A stretch of DNA of 64,000 nucleotides from Adineta vaga. Taxonomy: Eukaryota; Animalia; Rotifera. The stretch is taken from contig CP075493.1 in NCBI GenBank assembly GCA_021613535.1, positions 2,418,001 through 2,482,000 of the forward strand, in the 5' to 3' direction. The position numbers were made by a program, and so were the translations under genes. The stretch's first letter is position 1; each line of letters begins with the position of its first letter. This document shows positions 1 through 9,800 of the stretch, in pieces. The notes below the pieces were generated by a model. That model was not told the DNA's origin and searched no databases. It saw nothing but the letters and a program-made list of their open reading frames with translations.

Positions 1-788
1 GATGATAGTTTTCAACTATAAGTATTGATGATCTTTAAACTTCTTATCAATTCAGACTATAATTAACGATACTATTTCTGTACTCATTATTCTTGAGAAA
101 CACTTGAAAAAGACTTAATTCTTCCGTTTATTCAACATCATTTAAGAAAAGTATTTACTGATTAGTTTCGTTGAGTGAATAATAAACTATCGTTTGAAAA
201 CTTTTGTTGTAACTCTTATAGACTTATTGGTCACATCAACACATACTTTATCGATGCTTCAAGAACAGGACAAATATAAAAAAAGAAATCTCAGTCGAAA
301 TCCTTAAAGTCATAACTTCAAAAACAATGTATGACAAACAAGCAATTAATATATATATGTTTTTTTTCTAAGCTCTAGATGATAGCAAATAACGAAACAG
401 AATTTCTTCCATCTTTCTTTTCAAAGTATTGTACAGAGAAATCTCAAATATTTAGATCAGCTATTTGCTAATCTGATTGATTTTGAACAGAGAACGGACA
501 TATGCTCAGAATTTCATATGAATTGTTGATAATTCATTCGTATTCATTAATCTCGAAATGACTTTTATTTTTTTTCTTATCGCATATAAATCGTTCTTGA
601 CACTATTAAAGAAAATATCGTCTCTCATGGGAAACGATTGGAAACGAGATAGTTTACGTGAAGATCTTGATTGAATGAAAATTCGAACCATGATATTTCA
701 ATGTTATCATAAGAGAATAGTTTATTCAAAAGGTCATCTATTAATCTGAATAATTGCAAATAAAGATATAATACAAAGGAAGATCTGT

Positions 789-2452
789 TTAATTTTCTTC
801 ATCTTCATCTTCTGTCATATCAGCCATAATATCTTCCGATTGTTGTAATCCAATAAGTGATTGTTGACTTAGTACTGTATAAGTCGTATCTCCAGCATTT
901 GTCGTCATCTAGAAAAACGAAAATACATGGCATCAAAGATTCTACTCAATAACAATTTACTCGTTGTTTTGTATTTGTAGATGACAGATCATCGAGAATA
1001 TCAATATCCTGGTCGAATTGATTTGTCGTTGTTCGCATTGGTGGTGAAACTGGTGCAGGACGTTTCTTTCCTGTTCGATTCATACCCGTTGTATTTATTG
1101 TATATTGTCGATAGGAAACTAAATCATCTTCATCCATTGTTGATATATTACTACAGAAATATTCTATTGCAAATTCAATTGATTTAACATTCACAATCAT
1201 ACTTAGCACTTGCTTGAGTATTTGAAAAAGTTGGATCAGTTTCACCTTCTCGATTAGCAATTGTTGCAAATACAAAAATACCATCAAAATAAAATTCTTC
1301 GGCATCGAAACAAAATATAATCGGTCTACATAGAGATCAATCGTTTTACTTCAAAGAATAGATTTATTTCGTTACCGTCCACGACTATCGAAAAGTATTG
1401 TCATAGGTAAATTAATAAGATCAGCTAGACCTAATAGAAACTAAACAAAAAACAAGATTCGAACAACAAAATACTCACAACTTCATACTTTAAATTCTCG
1501 TAGACAAAATGTAATATCTGAATTATGTTGAATATCATAACTAACAAATTCTCTTGGCTCGCAAACAACTTGAAAGTTCATACTATACACCACGCTATCA
1601 TCTAAATAGGAGATCATTTTCAGACTTGAGGGTGTTTTTTTCCGTTCGATTATACAAACCATCATGAACAATTTCATCACACTTCTTAATAATAAATTGA
1701 TCTTTCGTTGCACGAATAGTGATTTCATCCCATTTCGCTGGAAAATGTGCCGTTAATTCTTGTAAAGTTTTACTCATAATTGAAACATTATTTTTATATG
1801 ATTGTTTATCAAATCGTGCTTGAAGTTTTTCACAATCAATATAAAAACATGAATGAACTTTAACAATATCTATAAATTACAAATGTCAAACACGATTTCA
1901 AACCATTCGTTGAACTTACTATATCGACAATGAAGTACAAATGATAGATTCGATTTTTGATCATCAAAAACTAATTCAAGTCGTGTTAATTTACTGGATA
2001 GAACAGCATGTACAGCAGACATACATCGCTGAAGAAGAAAGAAAAAAACAGTTCAAATATGGAGAAATCTTCTAATCGAAGATTTACTTTCGCAGAAATT
2101 CGACACTTAATCTTCTCCTTTTGTAACTCATCTTGTGGCCATTCTTGAAAAAATTCTCGATTAAATGTAATACATGAATATGATGAGCGTGATTGATTTG
2201 CTGTTCGAAAACTTAACTAAAATCACAAAGGAAAATCATCGATTTCTATGAGAATATCTTCATTCATTTACACCGTTGGTTTTGTTACTTAATTCAATAT
2301 AAATTTCTTCACCAAGTTTTGTCAAAACTTGTAATGTCTTTCCGAAATCTATTCGGAAAAAAAATGATTTATCTTAATTCGATAAATTTATCCATTCTCT
2401 TACGTCGAACATGTTCCGGTGGAATGACAAAATGAAATTTCTTTTCTGTCAT
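789..2452 (-). CDS. RAD9: Cell-cycle checkpoint clamp protein Rad9 (9-1-1 complex), multi-exon
   Basis: Spliced translation MTEKKFHFVIPPEHVR/FGKTLQVLTKLGEEIYIE../LSFRTANQSRSSYSCITFNREFFQEW...ITFCLREFK matches the Rad9 N-terminus and the ITFCLKE motif; acidic C-terminal tail SEDIMADMTEDEDEEN*. Confidence 0.9.
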
Positions 2453-2574
2453 TATTATCTTAAAAGAAAAAATGAACCATCACTTGTTTGGTGCTCGATT
2501 TTATTTTTATACATAATCATCAAGAAAAGAAAAGAAACTAGCAGGTAGCAAAAAGAAAATGAAGATTTGTTCTA

Positions 2575-2932
2575 TTAAGCAAGTGCTGAAGATTCTTGTC
2601 GACGTTTTGCAACATAAATTCGATTATTCGCACATGCAATACAATACACATATTGATCACCAGAAACTAGAAATATGAATATTAGAAAGAAGACATCGTT
2701 TTGAAATGTAGAATAACATGAACTAACTTGTAAATCGTTTAAATGCTAAATGTTTTGTTGGATGAACACTGACTTTTGCAGCACATAGAACGATTTTATA
2801 TAGTTGACTTGCAACTTGTTCATTATTTTGTAAATCACCATGACTATGTTCAATTGAACCATCTGCATTCAGAATTAAATATCCGACACAATCGGGAACA
2901 TTATCAAAGACTTTATTTATCGATGAACTCAT
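2575..2932 (-). CDS. LAMTOR4: Ragulator complex protein LAMTOR4, 2 exons
   Basis: VPDCVGYLILNADGSIEHSHGDLQNNEQVA...FKRFT / SGDQYVYCIACANNRIYVAKRR resembles LAMTOR4 (IPDQLGYLVL..SSGDLENDE..FKRLSV..RVFVVKRQ); ~100 aa. Confidence 0.9.
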
Positions 2933-3000
2933 CTGAAATAAGAAGAAAGAAAAAGATGTAAGAAATTGATTTTGTTGTACTAGAAATTTGATTTAAAAGA

Positions 3001-4181
3001 TTAGTTAAATGTCATCCAATCACGTATATGAGAATCTGAATGAGTCTGACTTGATGTTAACCATTGCTTTCCATAATCAGGATTCATTAAACCAAGTAAC
3101 CCACCTGTATGTAGAAATAGAATGTTTTTTCCATCACATGCAAAACGTTGATGACGTAATTCTTCATATAAACCCCATAAACATTTGCCTGTATAAACAG
3201 GATCAAAAATAATTCCGGTTTCACCAATGATTTGATGAAGAAAATTAATCTGTTCATCAGTCATACGACCATAACCTAAACCAACATGAGAATCATAGAT
3301 ATTAACAAGCTGATTATTATCAATAAGTTTAGTTAAATGATCAAGTTCTAATTGATGTAAAATAGTTTTAAAATGTGTTTTGAAATAAGTTTCATTGTCT
3401 GATACAGCAAATGCATGAATACGTAAACGATTACCAGTAAAATAATTTGCAAGAGCAAGTCCTTCCATAGTACCGCCACTACTCATCGGTACAACAAGAT
3501 GACCGAGATTAAATTTATCAATCAATGGAATTATTTCATTGAGAAAACAATCAAGATATCCAAATATACCAGTTATATCTGATCTAAATGCAATATTGAA
3601 ATTTGGATAGAGTTCTATAGAACGAACACTGACCCTCCAATTGGTATGGAATAACATTTTTCTTTTCCACCTAATTGATCTTCTAAGACTTCTATTCGTG
3701 GTTCGATATCACGTTGAATATTAGCTTTTTTCGGTATAAGATATAATTTTGCACCTAATAAATAATTGAGAAGTACATTACCTTGTAAAATTTGTTCATC
3801 TTCTTTATTTCGATCCGTTCGAAGTAAGATATGTGCTTGTTTTTGAAATCGTGCTGCAAGAATAGCTACTGCTTTACAATGATTACTATGTAATGAACCG
3901 GCTGTTATTATATGTTCACATTTAGGACGTGAGAGAATATCTGCAAAGAGAAATTCAAGTTTTCGTAGTTTATTTCCACTTGAATAACTATCGAGTTGAT
4001 CATCGCGTTTGATAAATATATTCGATGAAGGAAATAATGATGAATGAAATTTTTCAACAGATGTTTCATGATTGATTAATGATAAACGATATTTTGGAAG
4101 AAATTTGGAATTGATACATTGTTGATCGAATGGAAATGTATAAGATTTGAGAAGAGATGATGGAGATAATCGACGATACAT
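3001..4181 (-). CDS. PLP-dependent D-cysteine desulfhydrase / ACC deaminase-family enzyme, one 50 bp intron (3584-3633)
   Basis: Motifs IKRDD..SGNKLRKLEF (PLP lysine), SNHC, IPIGGS, SSGGT, FDPVYTGK, FLHTGG. A GT-AG intron at 3633-3584 joins ORFs 3615-4181 and 3001-3657 in frame (IPIGG/SDITGIFGY). Confidence 0.9.
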
Positions 4182-4303
4182 TTAAAAAGAAAACAAATGA
4201 AAATATCTGAAAGAATTAGTTTATCTTAAATTCTATTCTCAAAGAGAATAATGATTAAGTTTAGCTCAAGACTGAAATTTCGTATTCTATACTATAAAAT
4301 CAA

Positions 4304-6338
4304 TCATGTTCGTCGAATTTTACTCAAATGAAGACGTAATTGTTCTGCTAATTGTTCTCGTGGAATGGCAAACTAAATAAATATATATTGTGTATAAATA
4401 TAAAACTAAGCATCGTTCAAACCTCTTCTCGAGTGTTGACATTACGAATTTTAACTGTACCATTTTCTAATTCTGTACTTCCAATAATAATACACAATTC
4501 AATTTGATGTTTTTCACAATATTGTAATTGATCAAGTAATTTTGGATTATGTCTATAAGCCATTTCAGTCTATAATTAAATAGATGTTGTCTTTTATGAA
4601 AATATCCCATAACATTTATAATCGAACCTGAAAACCATTTTCCCACAAGTAAGCGCATAATTTCATTCGTTCTTCTAAAAAATTCTTTTCTGCAGATGCA
4701 ACATAAATTTCTGTTGGAAGAATCTTCGATTGAGTCTTTGATAACTACGTTTAAATACAAATATACATATGAAGGAAAAATCATTCATTGCTTACTGATA
4801 ATTGATGTTCTTTAATTGCAAATATTCTTTCAACACCAATACTAACACCTACACATGGTACTCGTTTTTGATTGGGATCAAGTTTTTGCACAAGTTCATC
4901 GTATCTTCCTCCACCAGCAATACTTCCAACAGCGATTTGATCATCACCAAGTTCAGGATTGTATTGATATTCACTTAGAATTGCTTCGAATATCACACCA
5001 GTATAATAATCTAATCCACGAGCTAATTTCAAATCAAATACGATCTAAAAAGAATAGATATGTGTCTGATTGCAATCAAAATAAATAGATTAATTTACTT
5101 TATCTGTTACATTGAATAATTTTAAATAGCGAAAGAGTAATTCAAGATCACGTAAAGCTTCATTTGCAAGTTTTTGAGAAGTTAATTGTGAATCAGTTCG
5201 AAGTCGATCAATCAAATCAACATTACCTTTCAATAAACAATAAAAGATATATATTTTAATCAATGCAAACTAACATACCATTTAGTTGTACATAATTCCA
5301 AATTCTATCCGCTGTTTCAGGAGATAAACCTCGTTCATTAATCATTTCATTTCGAGCTACATCCCATGATATCTATAATAATCATAACTAAAATCAATAA
5401 AATTCAAACTTTCTTACTTTATCAAGTTTATCGATTGTTGAACTAAGGGAACGAAAAAGTTTCTCAGGTACACCACATATTGTAAATATTGCATCAAGTA
5501 ATTTTCGATGATTAATCTAATGTATTTCAAAATAGTACACTTATTAAATCTATTTATCTCAACTTACAAAGATTTTATATTGTCCCAATGAAAGTTTATC
5601 AAGAATTTCAATGATAATTTTCACACATTCAGCATCGGGTATCATCGGATCGTAAACACCAGCAATATCAAAATCACATTGATAAAATTCTCGATATCGA
5701 CCACGTGTCATTTTGGGAATATCACGACGATAAACTTTACCAATATGATAACGTTTCATTGTCAATATTTTATTCTGTGATATATAACGTGCAAATGGAA
5801 CTGTCAAATCATAACGTAAAGCTAATGATTCTTCATTTTCATAATCTTTTATTTCATAGATTAGCTTCGAATCTTCACCATATTTTTCTTTTAACAATGT
5901 CTAAAATCGAATATCTAATAAATATAAAGAGAAAATGAGAATCTATAATACAGTTGATTCCATAACGGGTGTATCGATAGTTGTAGCACCATGTTGTTTA
6001 AAACAATTGATAATTGTACGAAAAACATTTTCACGAATTTTCATTTGATTTGCATGATAATCTCGAGTGCCCTAAATTTGATTTTCATAATCGATATTTC
6101 TTTTTTGAATAAATCAAAACTTACTCGAGGTACTCTAAGTATACTCTTTAAATCATCGTCTCTATTCGTTGTTGATTGTTCTTTTTTTGAACTAAGTAAT
6201 TTCGATACAGTATCATTAATCTAAAATTACACCAAACAAACTCCCGATGATTTTCTATTTATTTCTGATTACCTGACGTGGTCGAGCATGATACAAAACT
6301 TTTCGAGTGTATAAATACGTATGGAAAATCAATCTCAT
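4304..6338 (-). CDS. HARS2: Histidyl-tRNA synthetase, probably the mitochondrial form (basic N-terminal presequence, no complete WHEP domain), multi-exon
   Basis: [74 protein letters not shown]; N-terminus [22 protein letters not shown]. HisRS identity is secure; the mitochondrial assignment is inference. Confidence 0.9.
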
Positions 6339-6856
6339 GTTTCTTTTTTTTCAGAAACAATTTTCCAAATCTTATTTGACAGAAAAAAAGAACAAGTAAT
6401 CGTTTTCTTTTTCTCTTTTCTTACTTAACTGTTTGAATGAAATGAGGTCCATATTTTTTTCTCAATGGATAGTAATAACCAATGAAATGTATTCTCAAAA
6501 CGACGCGTGTACAACGCTGGTGAATACAAGAACGAACGAAAAAAAACGCGCATTGCTATGTAATGAAAACGAACAGAAATATGATACAACATTGAGTTAT
6601 GCTTGATTGAGTTATCAAACCGTTATTTGAAATATTTTTTGTATAATATTGAATTATTTTTCATTTTTAGATCTTCTTGTCAGCGTCTTCTATGTTCGTT
6701 TTGTAGTTAGTCATACCAATATCGATTTTGTCCTTGTCTTACCGTTTGTTGCCTATTATATTGTGATATATTGGCTTAGTGAAGTGAATTTATTCTATTC
6801 AAAACGAATATTGAACGTTGTTTTCATGACAATATTGCAAATCTTAAGTTTATACA
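6339..6856. promoter_or_regulatory. Probable bidirectional promoter region between HisRS (minus) and the giant coiled-coil gene (plus)
   Basis: Head-to-head ATGs ~520 bp apart; local cluster of CG-containing words (gacgcgtgtacaacgc ~6500, aacgcgcatt ~6545) in an otherwise CpG-poor background. Confidence 0.5.
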
Positions 6857-9800
6857 ATGACCTATCAACCAGCAAATCCATTGTCTTTCACAACTAGATC
6901 AAGTTCAAGTTCATCAAATTCAAACGATGATACAGAAAATGTATCAGAACATCTTTCGTCATCAATTCCTTTTATTGATGCATCATCATCATTAGACGAT
7001 TCTGATAGTAAAACTCATGGAAGTCATTCTCTTACTAGACAAATTTCTTTATCAGAAACTGATTTACTCGCATCGATACATCGAAATCAATCTGATCATG
7101 AAATACCTGATGATATACTTTTTCTTGATTGGGATAAAGAACGTAATTTATATCAAGATTATATTAGTTCATTACGTAAAGAAATTCGTGTTCTTCTTCA
7201 AGAACGTGCTGAATATCGGACACAAAAAGCATCATTTACCGATGATCAGATGAAAATTGATTTATTACAAAAATCTTTACATGAGAAAAATTTCGTCATT
7301 GAACAGTTACAAACTGATTCGGAATCATTGAAAGAAAAAAATACAAATTTAATTCGAAAAATATCAACTTTAGAATCGGATACAAAATCATCGATAAATA
7401 TAATTGATGAATTAAAACAAAAAATTACTGATTTAACGATTGATCTACAAAATCATATTTTAATTAAACGTCGGTTAGATATTTCAATTCATAATTTAGA
7501 ATCAGATTGTAAAATTATTGATACTGAAAGAATTAAATTAACAAATGAAATGAAAGAAAATCAACATAATAAACAAGATTTAGAAAAATTATTACAAAAA
7601 GCCAATGTACAAATTGCAGAACAAGGTAATCTAATCGAGATTTTTTTGAATGAATGATCAATTCATAATAATTAATTCTCTAAATTAGTATTATTGATAG
7701 TCGAAGATACGCGTGATCTTGTATTTCGTGAATGAATACGTTTTGTTTTCTTTTTTTCAAAAAAAAAATTAGGTTCAACGATTGAAATGCTTCGTTCGGA
7801 AAATGTTCAAGTTCGTTCTCAACTAGCTACAGTTCAACGTCGAATGTTTCAAGAAAAACAACAAATTATGGATTATTTACGTCAAATTGAAGCTGATCTA
7901 ATTGAAAAAGAACAAATAAAGCAACGTGAAGCTTCATTACAACAAGAATATGAACAATTACAAGTTATTAATAAACAAGATCGAAAAGAAATCGAACAAT
8001 TGAAAAATTTCATTAGTCAAGATCAACAAACAATTGAAGATTTAAAACAACAATGTTCATTGTTATTACACAAAGTTCAAAATGAAGAAAATGAAAAACA
8101 TCAATTAAAATCTCATTTAGATACTTATCAATCCGAAATGAAACAATCAAATGCATATTCACATAAGTCTATCGAATCGATCGATCAGTTGATACCGATC
8201 ATAGACGAACAACATCAAACTCAACTGACTTTAACGTCGAACGATGAATATAATAAACTTCGTGAAGATTTTGATAATATAACTGAAGAATATAAGAAAT
8301 TACAGGAAGATAATCAAGCATGGTTACAATATCAACAAAATCAATTATTAGTGTTACGTGATCGATTGAATTTATCTGATAATGATGGTAATATATCGTT
8401 TGATGATCTTTTACAACAAATTGAAGAGCGTTTCAGTAATATTAAAAATGAATGTGATACATTAGCTAATCGAGTCATTGAATTACAAGGTAAGTTTTCT
8501 CAACGCTAAAAATGTGAAAGAAAAATAACCGCATTTCATTTGTTTAGCAGCAAATATAAATAATAATGATAAGCAAAGATCTGATAATAGAAATGAAGAT
8601 GAAATGCAACAGAATCTCGCAATTTTAACATCTCAATGTACTCAGTTGGAAGAAGCAAATCGTGCATGGCAACAATTTCAACAAACTCAACTAGAAAACT
8701 TTCGTGTTAAACTTAAGCATCGATTTCCTTTGGAAGATAAGATCTCTTTTGATGAAATAGCAGAAATCATTGTTAATCATGTCGATCCAATAAATCGAAA
8801 AGATGTAGCACCATTATCCGAAGACGCATCATTGCATAATCTCACACTAGTTCAATCCGCACCTTCTCACGATGGCGAACGTGACGAGGAACTTCGTCAA
8901 CTTCGAGACAATCTTATTTTACTCACTGCTCAATGTGCACAACTCGATGAAGCTAATCGCGCATGGCCAGCCTATCATCAGACACAACTTCAAACTTTAC
9001 AAAATGAACTTCAACCATATATACCTTTATCTAATGAAGTCACATTTGATCAACTTCCTCAACTCATCCGTGATCAGATTGACAAAGAAAAAGAAGATTT
9101 CGATCAACGTATCAAGCATTGCAAAAACTATATGAGGATTTACAACAAGGTAAGACTTCCTCATTCACTTGAACGTGATCATCTCGTGTTTGTGTTTAGA
9201 ATCATCAACGAATCTAGAAACTATCAAACAATCCTACATCAATACTGTCAATGAACTCACTCAAGAACTATCAGCCTTGAAAGAAGAACTCGACAAACGA
9301 CCTGCACATGATCTCACTCAACAACTCACTGGTAACAATCAGTTTATCGATGGCGTTTTAGATCAATCAAAACAAACATCGAACGAGGTATGTACAATAG
9401 TTTGTGTGTGATATATGTATCTATGTGGTTGATGTATGTTTAGAATGGTGATGAGATCAGTGTTGGAAATGATTGGGAAGATGTTGGCATCGATGTGCCA
9501 GTGTCAGAAACACCGTTGGATGTCTTACGAAATGAACTAGGAGATTGTTGTTTGTCAGTTGATTATAGTGGATCATTCGATGATGTTGTGAGAGAAGTTG
9601 TCAATCAGATTAGAAATGAACGAAAGGAACTGAATGAACGATACGATGCGTTGGAAAAGGTGAATCGTGACATTCGATCAGGTAATTTCTATCAAATACT
9701 CATTGATTTCGTTAATGTTTTGTTCTTTGAAGAATCAGAAGCAAATATGGAATCCATTCGACAATCGTATACGAATACTGTCAATGAATTAAATCAAGAA

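Follow-up and report, generated by a model that had tools for sequence, protein, structure and literature searches.

The minus strand of a 64,000-nucleotide stretch of DNA from the bdelloid rotifer Adineta vaga (C1:2418001-2482000 of the genome, which comprises 100.8 Mb in six contigs; this whole stretch is hereafter referred to as the window) carries four co-oriented genes, the predicted products of which are a histidyl-tRNA synthetase (HisRS), a pyridoxal phosphate (PLP)-dependent enzyme of the Pfam family PALP, the Ragulator subunit LAMTOR4, and the checkpoint-clamp subunit Rad9. The genes were recognized by reading the sequence of window positions 1-7500 together with a split into open stretches, and they follow one another with stop-to-ATG distances of 122 bp (HisRS-PALP), 68 bp (PALP-LAMTOR4), and 122 bp (LAMTOR4-Rad9). 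These four genes probably constitute an operon of the Ciona type, that is, one with no intercistronic DNA, which is resolved by spliced-leader (SL) trans-splicing. An earlier reading of this DNA (the original prediction) had already placed the four genes, their spacing, three acceptors, and an AATAAA on one strand, and all of these coordinates were confirmed on the minus strand.

In the proposed operon, RNA polymerase II would start ~100 nt upstream of the HisRS ATG, beside a conserved element at 6440-6545, and would produce one precursor containing HisRS, the PLP enzyme, LAMTOR4, and Rad9, which would end at the canonical AATAAA site after Rad9 (~710). Splitting of this precursor at three conserved acceptors (AG at 4208-4207, 2934-2933, and 2460-2459) would yield four mRNAs: the 23-nt rotifer leader would be added to each downstream mRNA at its acceptor, and each upstream mRNA would receive its poly(A) tail at this same AG or within 1-3 nt of it. 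We infer the leader addition at the three sites, the origin of the boundary-crossing RNA as one molecule from the HisRS promoter, and the lack of internal promoters. The features concerned are as follows (a slash within a sequence marks a junction).

6440-6545, minus strand: conserved non-coding element of ~100 bp upstream of HisRS, with TGTACACGCGTCG at 6501-6513, a reverse CCAAT box (GATTGGTTA), ACCAT, and CCTCA
4304-6338, minus strand: HisRS (gene 1), ATG at 6338, stop TGA at 4306-4304, ~10 short introns
4207-4303, minus strand: HisRS 3′-untranslated region (3′-UTR), ending at the AG (4208-4207) of the PALP acceptor, no canonical AATAAA
4182-4206, minus strand: predicted PALP 5′-UTR of 25 nt, downstream of the acceptor tctttcAG/ATTT
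3001-4181, minus strand: PALP (gene 2), PLP-dependent enzyme, ATG at 4181-4179, stop TAA at 3003-3001, 376 aa, one intron (3584-3633)
2933-3000, minus strand: PALP-LAMTOR4 gap of 68 bp, ending in cttatttcAG, with the ATG of LAMTOR4 directly abutting
2575-2932, minus strand: LAMTOR4 (gene 3), predicted Ragulator subunit, ATG at 2932, stop TAA at 2577-2575, ~98 aa, one intron (2667-2727)
2459-2574, minus strand: LAMTOR4 3′-UTR, with the conserved blocks TGCTAGTT and ATGATTAT and AATAAA at 2505-2500, ending at the Rad9 acceptor AG (2460-2459)
790-2452, minus strand: Rad9 (gene 4), checkpoint-clamp subunit, ATG at 2452-2450, stop at 792-790, nine introns
710-789, minus strand: Rad9 3′-UTR, with a canonical AATAAA at 727-722; end of the transcription unit

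RNA ends and acceptors at the gene boundaries

The RNA data were the assembled contigs of four runs from four studies (X1, X5, X11, and X12); such contigs cannot prove single molecules. All four runs behave as RNA: the listed joints are all short minus-strand introns of the GT..AG kind, and the introns of HisRS, LAMTOR4, and Rad9 are removed in the contigs. Each of the three boundaries is spanned by intron-free contigs, in runs from as many as three studies. The HisRS-PALP boundary is covered by record 7 of X11, which is continuous from 4372 (in the last HisRS exon) to 4060 (within PALP) and crosses the acceptor unspliced, and the PALP-LAMTOR4 boundary is crossed by record 5 of X11 (2819-3584) and record 10 of X12 (2824-3583 plus 3634-4004). 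At the LAMTOR4-Rad9 boundary, record 1 of X1 and record 4 of X11 have the LAMTOR4 intron removed, the 122-bp gap whole, and the Rad9 exons spliced.

Discrete RNA ends were also found at the acceptors. The HisRS-PALP boundary has a poly(A)-at-acceptor geometry: a loose end in X5 consists of 11 T before 4206, which corresponds to a minus-strand poly(A) tail right after …TTTCAG(A), at the PALP acceptor (4207/4206). The same geometry very probably holds for the LAMTOR4-Rad9 boundary. Record 13 of X5, a LAMTOR4 contig of 415 nt and depth 152 with the intron removed, covers exactly 2935-2460; its start lies 1 nt beyond the AG/ATG acceptor, the AG being common to the genome and the leader, and its end falls on the A in the AG of the Rad9 acceptor, the point at which the genome and a poly(A) tail would part. 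Thus, the 3′ ends of two upstream mRNAs, HisRS (by a poly(A) run) and LAMTOR4 (by a contig end), lie at or within 1-3 nt of the next acceptor. Since an upstream mRNA ends at the AG of the next gene, upstream transcription must cross the boundary. At the end of the unit, record 8 of X12 stops at 710, and the depth is zero over 500-699 in the four runs.

These ends bear on the possibility that the mRNAs of the four genes stay polycistronic and stable without ever being resolved, the downstream frames being translated by re-initiation or internal entry. The bridging contigs at all three gaps would suit such RNAs, but the poly(A) at 4206 and the separate LAMTOR4 contig are discrete ends at acceptors, and the conserved acceptors would then serve no role. 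This explanation fits the data poorly, and we consider it extremely improbable.

Each of the three downstream ATGs is preceded by an acceptor-like site: ttctttcAG for PALP (AG at 4208-4207), cttatttcAG/ATG for LAMTOR4 (AG at 2934-2933), and ttttcttttaAG/ataataATG for Rad9 (AG at 2460-2459), where the ATG follows 6 nt after the acceptor. When a strict acceptor was defined as at least 8 pyrimidines among 10 positions, a pyrimidine at −3, and AG, such sites occurred once per ~525 nt on the minus strand of the window, and only 6% of the ATGs had one within 30 nt upstream; the combination of AG/ATG and a pyrimidine tract was found for 0.6% of the ATGs. Two of the three boundary acceptors conform to the strict definition, and the Rad9 site has A at −3. 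Even with conservation set aside, this pattern is unlikely to be due to chance.

The signals in the 3′ regions differ among the genes. The HisRS and PALP 3′ regions lack AATAAA, and the last gene, Rad9, carries a canonical AATAAA 12-17 nt before its RNA end; the AATAAA of LAMTOR4 is located 40 nt before the end of that gene's RNA. The 122-bp gaps are simply a 3′-UTR plus a 5′-UTR of 0-25 nt and not an intercistronic spacer. In this respect the original prediction, which had assumed the ~100-bp spacing of nematode operons, needs to be corrected, as the poly(A) starts at the acceptor itself, as in Ciona.

Trans-splicing of an SL has been known in rotifers since 2005, and its occurrence in bdelloids, on which the original prediction had relied, agrees with the published leader and with the genome. 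The rotifer leader is 23 nt long (GGCTTATTACAACTTACCAAGAG; PMC3795323 Table 1), and a single SL form has been reported in rotifers (PMC2481426 Table 4). The A. vaga genome was found to contain 42 copies of the leader exon, (T)GCTTATTACAACTTACCAAGAG followed by GT, while the reversed control gave 0 copies; the 3′ end of the leader exon reads …TTACCAAGAG. Many of the SL RNA genes form head-to-head pairs ~156 bp apart, and clusters of them are located on C5 at 9.88-9.93 Mb and 10.91-10.93 Mb. The pair nearest to the window is at C1:2551158-2551338, at a distance of ~69 kb.

Two kinds of sequence difference were seen in the RNA runs. One is a 5-nt insertion (AAGAA, plus strand) at 2521, in the LAMTOR4 3′-UTR, in X11. 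The other is a set of single-base differences common to several runs, e.g., at 3448, 3451, and 4921-4981, and the public RNA data therefore contain at least two haplotypes or strains.

Conservation, the upstream element, and independent transcription

Orthologue contigs from Logan, JGI, and ENA were compared with the window. We considered whether they could be cDNA and rejected this, since all of them are genomic, being collinear with the window including introns and gaps; they were used for conservation only. A. ricciae, Rotaria sordida, and four or more further bdelloid contig sets retain HisRS, PALP, LAMTOR4, and Rad9 in this order on a single strand. The gaps between the coding regions are 100, 31, and 120 bp in A. 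ricciae and ~685, 93, and 147 bp in R. sordida, despite the much larger introns of the latter. The conservation of gene order and spacing in relatives, which the original prediction had proposed as a check, was thus obtained.

Within the gaps, all three acceptors are kept while the remaining sequence diverges. The LAMTOR4 acceptor, a pyrimidine tract and AG abutting ATGAG, was found in 12 of 12 loci including both ohnologues, where the remainder of the gap is between 31 and ~115 nt long. The Rad9 acceptor, tttt(a/g)AAG/ATA…ATG, was found in 8 of 8 loci, and the PALP acceptor, …tttcAG/ATTT, occurs ~25 nt before the ATG in all PALP loci examined, including those of A. ricciae and R. sordida. In the HisRS-PALP spacer of R. 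sordida (L005:3866-4753), the PALP acceptor is conserved despite the extra DNA.

These data also bear on the explanation that the acceptors are cis-splice sites, with 5′-UTR exons lying in the gaps or in the upstream genes and no leader being added, a caveat that the original prediction had itself raised. GT dinucleotides do exist 45-64 nt upstream of the acceptors, and, by count, about one joint beyond those listed is not a known intron. However, the candidate donor GTs are not conserved, being absent from the Rad9 gap in two species (L008 and L015), every listed contig crosses the gaps unspliced, and the polyadenylated HisRS RNA contains the entire presumed intron. Moreover, no GT dinucleotide occurs in the 31-bp PALP-LAMTOR4 gap of A. 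ricciae; this gap therefore has no room for a promoter, a 5′ exon, and an intron, and a cis-spliced 5′-UTR intron inside the gap is excluded there. Cis-spliced 5′-UTRs accordingly fit the data poorly and are very unlikely.

Upstream of HisRS, 518 bp separate the gene from a divergent gene (ATG at 6857, plus strand). Within this space, the element at 6440-6545 aligns across A. vaga, A. ricciae, R. sordida, a further species (L029), and both ohnologous HisRS loci (alignment A1), the ohnologous copies being located at L028:5217-5360 (C4) and L013:4107-4250 (A. ricciae). Its invariant 13-mer, TGTACACGCGTCG, has two occurrences in the 100.8-Mb genome, each upstream of a HisRS gene and followed by the reverse CCAAT box. 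Judged from these alignments, 6440-6545 is a gene-specific regulatory element predating the genome duplication, and it is likely to be the promoter of the four-gene unit. The 5′ ends of the HisRS contigs were placed at ~6390-6440, just downstream of the element, by rough depth arithmetic, which gives a weak estimate. In the three gaps, as far as they could be aligned, nothing comparable that resembles a promoter was found. The LAMTOR4-Rad9 gap does contain a conserved block (TGCTAGTT … ATGATTAT … AATAAA; alignment A2), and a similar block exists in the LAMTOR4 3′-UTR of the ohnologue. Because the ohnologue has this counterpart where no Rad9 follows, the block is the LAMTOR4 3′ end and not a Rad9 promoter.

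The ohnologous region (C4:12043000-12052999) provides information on the age of the arrangement. It carries a WHEP-containing HisRS, an interval of 430-600 bp, a second copy of LAMTOR4 that is 77% identical, and a DSPc phosphatase gene; PALP and Rad9 are missing. This arrangement without PALP and Rad9 was found in both A. vaga and A. ricciae. In A. vaga, DSPc is located ~1.1 kb downstream of Rad9, and it is also found downstream of Rad9 in the L029 species. Since the ohnologue keeps HisRS, LAMTOR4, and DSPc, the order HisRS-PALP-LAMTOR4-Rad9-DSPc existed before the bdelloid genome duplication, after which two genes were lost from one copy. The ohnologous LAMTOR4 retains the AG/ATG though it lies 430-600 bp from HisRS.

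The operon must be weighed against tightly packed independent genes, each with its own promoter inside the coding or 3′ region of the preceding gene and a short outron removed by leader trans-splicing, as in numerous monocistronic genes of trans-splicing animals; the bridging contigs would then be overlapping separate transcripts. Several observations count against the operon, and some of them are what independent genes would lead one to expect. One group concerns the RNA. No leader sequence at 4206, 2932, or 2458 was found among the loose ends listed in the four RNA runs, and a contig spanning two genes is an assembly and not proof of one molecule. The PALP contig of X1 ends at 2992, 9 nt past the stop codon, and the PALP 3′ end is thus not located at an acceptor. 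In X5, the LAMTOR4 contig is ~10 times as deep as those of PALP and Rad9, and the other runs show a 2-3 fold excess; contig depth is a poor measure, but this difference of up to 10-fold may reflect an internal promoter rather than higher RNA stability. We also scanned JGI metagenome contigs for the leader-to-gene junction (9 nt of the SL plus a degenerate LAMTOR4 or Rad9 start) and obtained 0 matches. A control scan of the same collection for the spliced LAMTOR4 exon 1-exon 2 junction likewise gave 0 matches; the collection therefore holds no LAMTOR4 cDNA, and the null result for the leader junction is uninformative. Another group concerns the genome: the HisRS-PALP gap of ~685 bp in Rotaria has room for a promoter, and trans-spliced monocistronic genes keep their acceptors too, so that a conserved acceptor alone is no proof of an operon. 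The AG/ATG retained by the ohnologous LAMTOR4 at its distance from HisRS is likewise in line with independent genes.

On the other side, independent genes do not readily account for an upstream mRNA that ends at the AG used by the next gene, for the occurrence of a conserved promoter-like block upstream of gene 1 and of none in the alignable parts of the gaps, for the A. ricciae gap of only 31 bp, or for a gene order kept across genera since before the genome duplication. The contig depths of HisRS, PALP, and Rad9, which as noted are a poor measure, also lie within 2-3 fold of one another in all four runs. Taken together, independent transcription seems rather unlikely, and we favor the SL-resolved operon. 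The single unit of the original prediction is supported by the bridging contigs, the RNA ends at the acceptors, the conservation, the SL genes, and the element upstream of gene 1, whereas a leader on the three downstream genes was not among the listed loose ends.

Beyond the element, the divergent neighbor of HisRS (6857-7657, plus strand) has an open reading frame of at least 266 aa, and it also stands beside HisRS in R. sordida (323 aa) and in the L029 species (343 aa). An A. ricciae gene model of ~4,786 aa starts at the position of this neighbor and may fuse it with a giant coiled-coil gene further on.

The products of the four genes

For the assignment of the products, exons were searched singly and full-length proteins were taken from database matches. 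The HisRS exons match the Pfam families tRNA-synt_His (PF13393, 34 and 39 bits) and HGTP_anticodon (PF03129, 36.5 bits), by which the gene 1 product is assigned as a class II histidyl-tRNA synthetase with both the core and the anticodon-binding domain present. The HisRS of the A. ricciae cluster is 512 aa long and lacks a WHEP domain, and its ohnologue is 550 aa long with WHEP-TRS. The HisRS of the window also lacks WHEP, and its N-terminal peptide is basic and free of acidic residues. From these two features, the cluster HisRS is plausibly the mitochondrial form, as the original prediction had it, though this remains at the level of sequence features; the pair suggests that the HisRS duplicates split cytosolic and mitochondrial roles after the genome duplication.

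Two further observations concern RNA over HisRS. The depth has a spike at 5500-5699 (164 in X1, 351 in X11, and 122 in X12), accompanied by loose ends at 5657 and 5847. These probably stem from the far more expressed paralogous WHEP-HisRS on C4, the stretch being conserved between both genes. In addition, a 255-nt loose end at 6332 was considered as an alternative HisRS 5′ exon and rejected as a chance 21-nt match to C5:8529428.

Gene 2 matches Pfam PALP in the exon search, and its exon-2 segment (82% of the query) is 100% identical to the A. vaga protein I4U23_000682. The best PDB match of the enzyme is the D-cysteine desulfhydrase 7ysk (E=1.5e-33). Against TIGR01275, the model of the D-cysteine desulfhydrase family, the enzyme scores 213 bits with a cut-off of 289, and every equivalog model is far under its cut-off. 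The fold family is clear from these matches, namely ACC-deaminase / D-cysteine desulfhydrase, and D-cysteine is a candidate substrate only by resemblance. Thus, the family in the name "D-cysteine desulfhydrase" used by the original prediction can be retained, but the substrate is not established, because the scores lie under every curated cut-off. The nearest Atlas clusters of the enzyme are both bacterial and echinoderm; a foreign origin was considered, and we make no claim of one.

The assignment of gene 3 as LAMTOR4 rests on its A. ricciae orthologue, which is 93% identical to exon 1 of the window gene and matches the human LAMTOR4 chains in solved structures over residues 2-92 (E=1.4e-11). 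The Rad9 exon pieces score 33.7, 44.5, and 22.7 bits against Pfam Rad9 (PF04139; cut-off 25). PALP and Rad9 are each single copy in the A. vaga genome. The four genes have no common pathway, as is usual for animal operons, and no evidence was found for the suggestion in the original prediction that they are co-regulated for recovery from dormancy.

Comparison with known operons

No published rotifer operon was found in the searchable literature. Wenzel et al. (2021) explicitly state that no operons have been reported in rotifers (PMC7986045), and rotifer operons are given as "ND" in Table 4 of PMC2481426. A wider claim can be framed from the present unit: bdelloids would have true operons without intercistronic DNA, in which poly(A) and the next leader are placed at the same AG and 3′-end formation and trans-splicing are coupled or compete, and the four-gene unit would date from before the genome duplication and have been kept across families, with two genes lost from the ohnologue. 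We regard the arguments for and against this claim as evenly balanced. The value of the result lies in the genome-wide phenomenon more than in these four genes. If such operons are documented, rotifers will join the short list of operon-bearing animals (nematodes, tunicates, chaetognaths, and flatworms), and because chaetognaths are gnathiferan relatives of rotifers, this will bear on whether operons originated once or repeatedly. Bdelloid annotation and expression analysis would also be affected, in that neighbors may have a common promoter and abutting genes risk being merged or mis-modelled. Finally, because the poly(A) site coincides with the acceptor, the question of how one precursor yields both mRNAs could be asked in a second, distant system besides Ciona.

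In C. elegans, operons of the SL2 type are enriched in housekeeping and mitochondrial genes. The present unit resembles them in its co-oriented genes, in the ~100 bp between coding regions, and in a precursor that would be resolved by trans-splicing; it differs in that the poly(A) site is not followed by a ~100-nt spacer ahead of the acceptor, and rotifers are not known to have a specialised second leader.

In chaetognaths, 3 nt separate the poly(A) site from the next acceptor (Marletaz et al. 2008, PMC2481426), and the operons have been documented by leader-bearing expressed sequence tags and Iso-Seq reads (PMC2481426; Nature 2025, PMC12460157). The A. vaga unit is like them in its housekeeping genes and in the lack of an operon-specific leader, and unlike them in that it rests on contigs and conservation.

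The closest likeness is seen with the operons of Ciona intestinalis and the minor SL1-type operons of C. elegans, in which co-oriented unrelated genes are also combined and one leader serves monocistronic and operon genes alike. In Ciona operons, the poly(A) tail belonging to the upstream gene directly follows the acceptor AG, no intercistronic DNA exists, and AATAAA is absent from most upstream cistrons (Satou et al. 2006, PMC1488885). Likewise, the upstream cistrons of the A. vaga unit mostly lack a well-placed AATAAA, and the last gene, Rad9, has one. The differences from Ciona are that LAMTOR4, an upstream cistron, has an AATAAA 40 nt before its end, that leader addition on the A. vaga genes is predicted and the PALP 3′ end was not placed at an acceptor, and that the unit belongs to another phylum, Rotifera, with an unrelated 23-nt leader.

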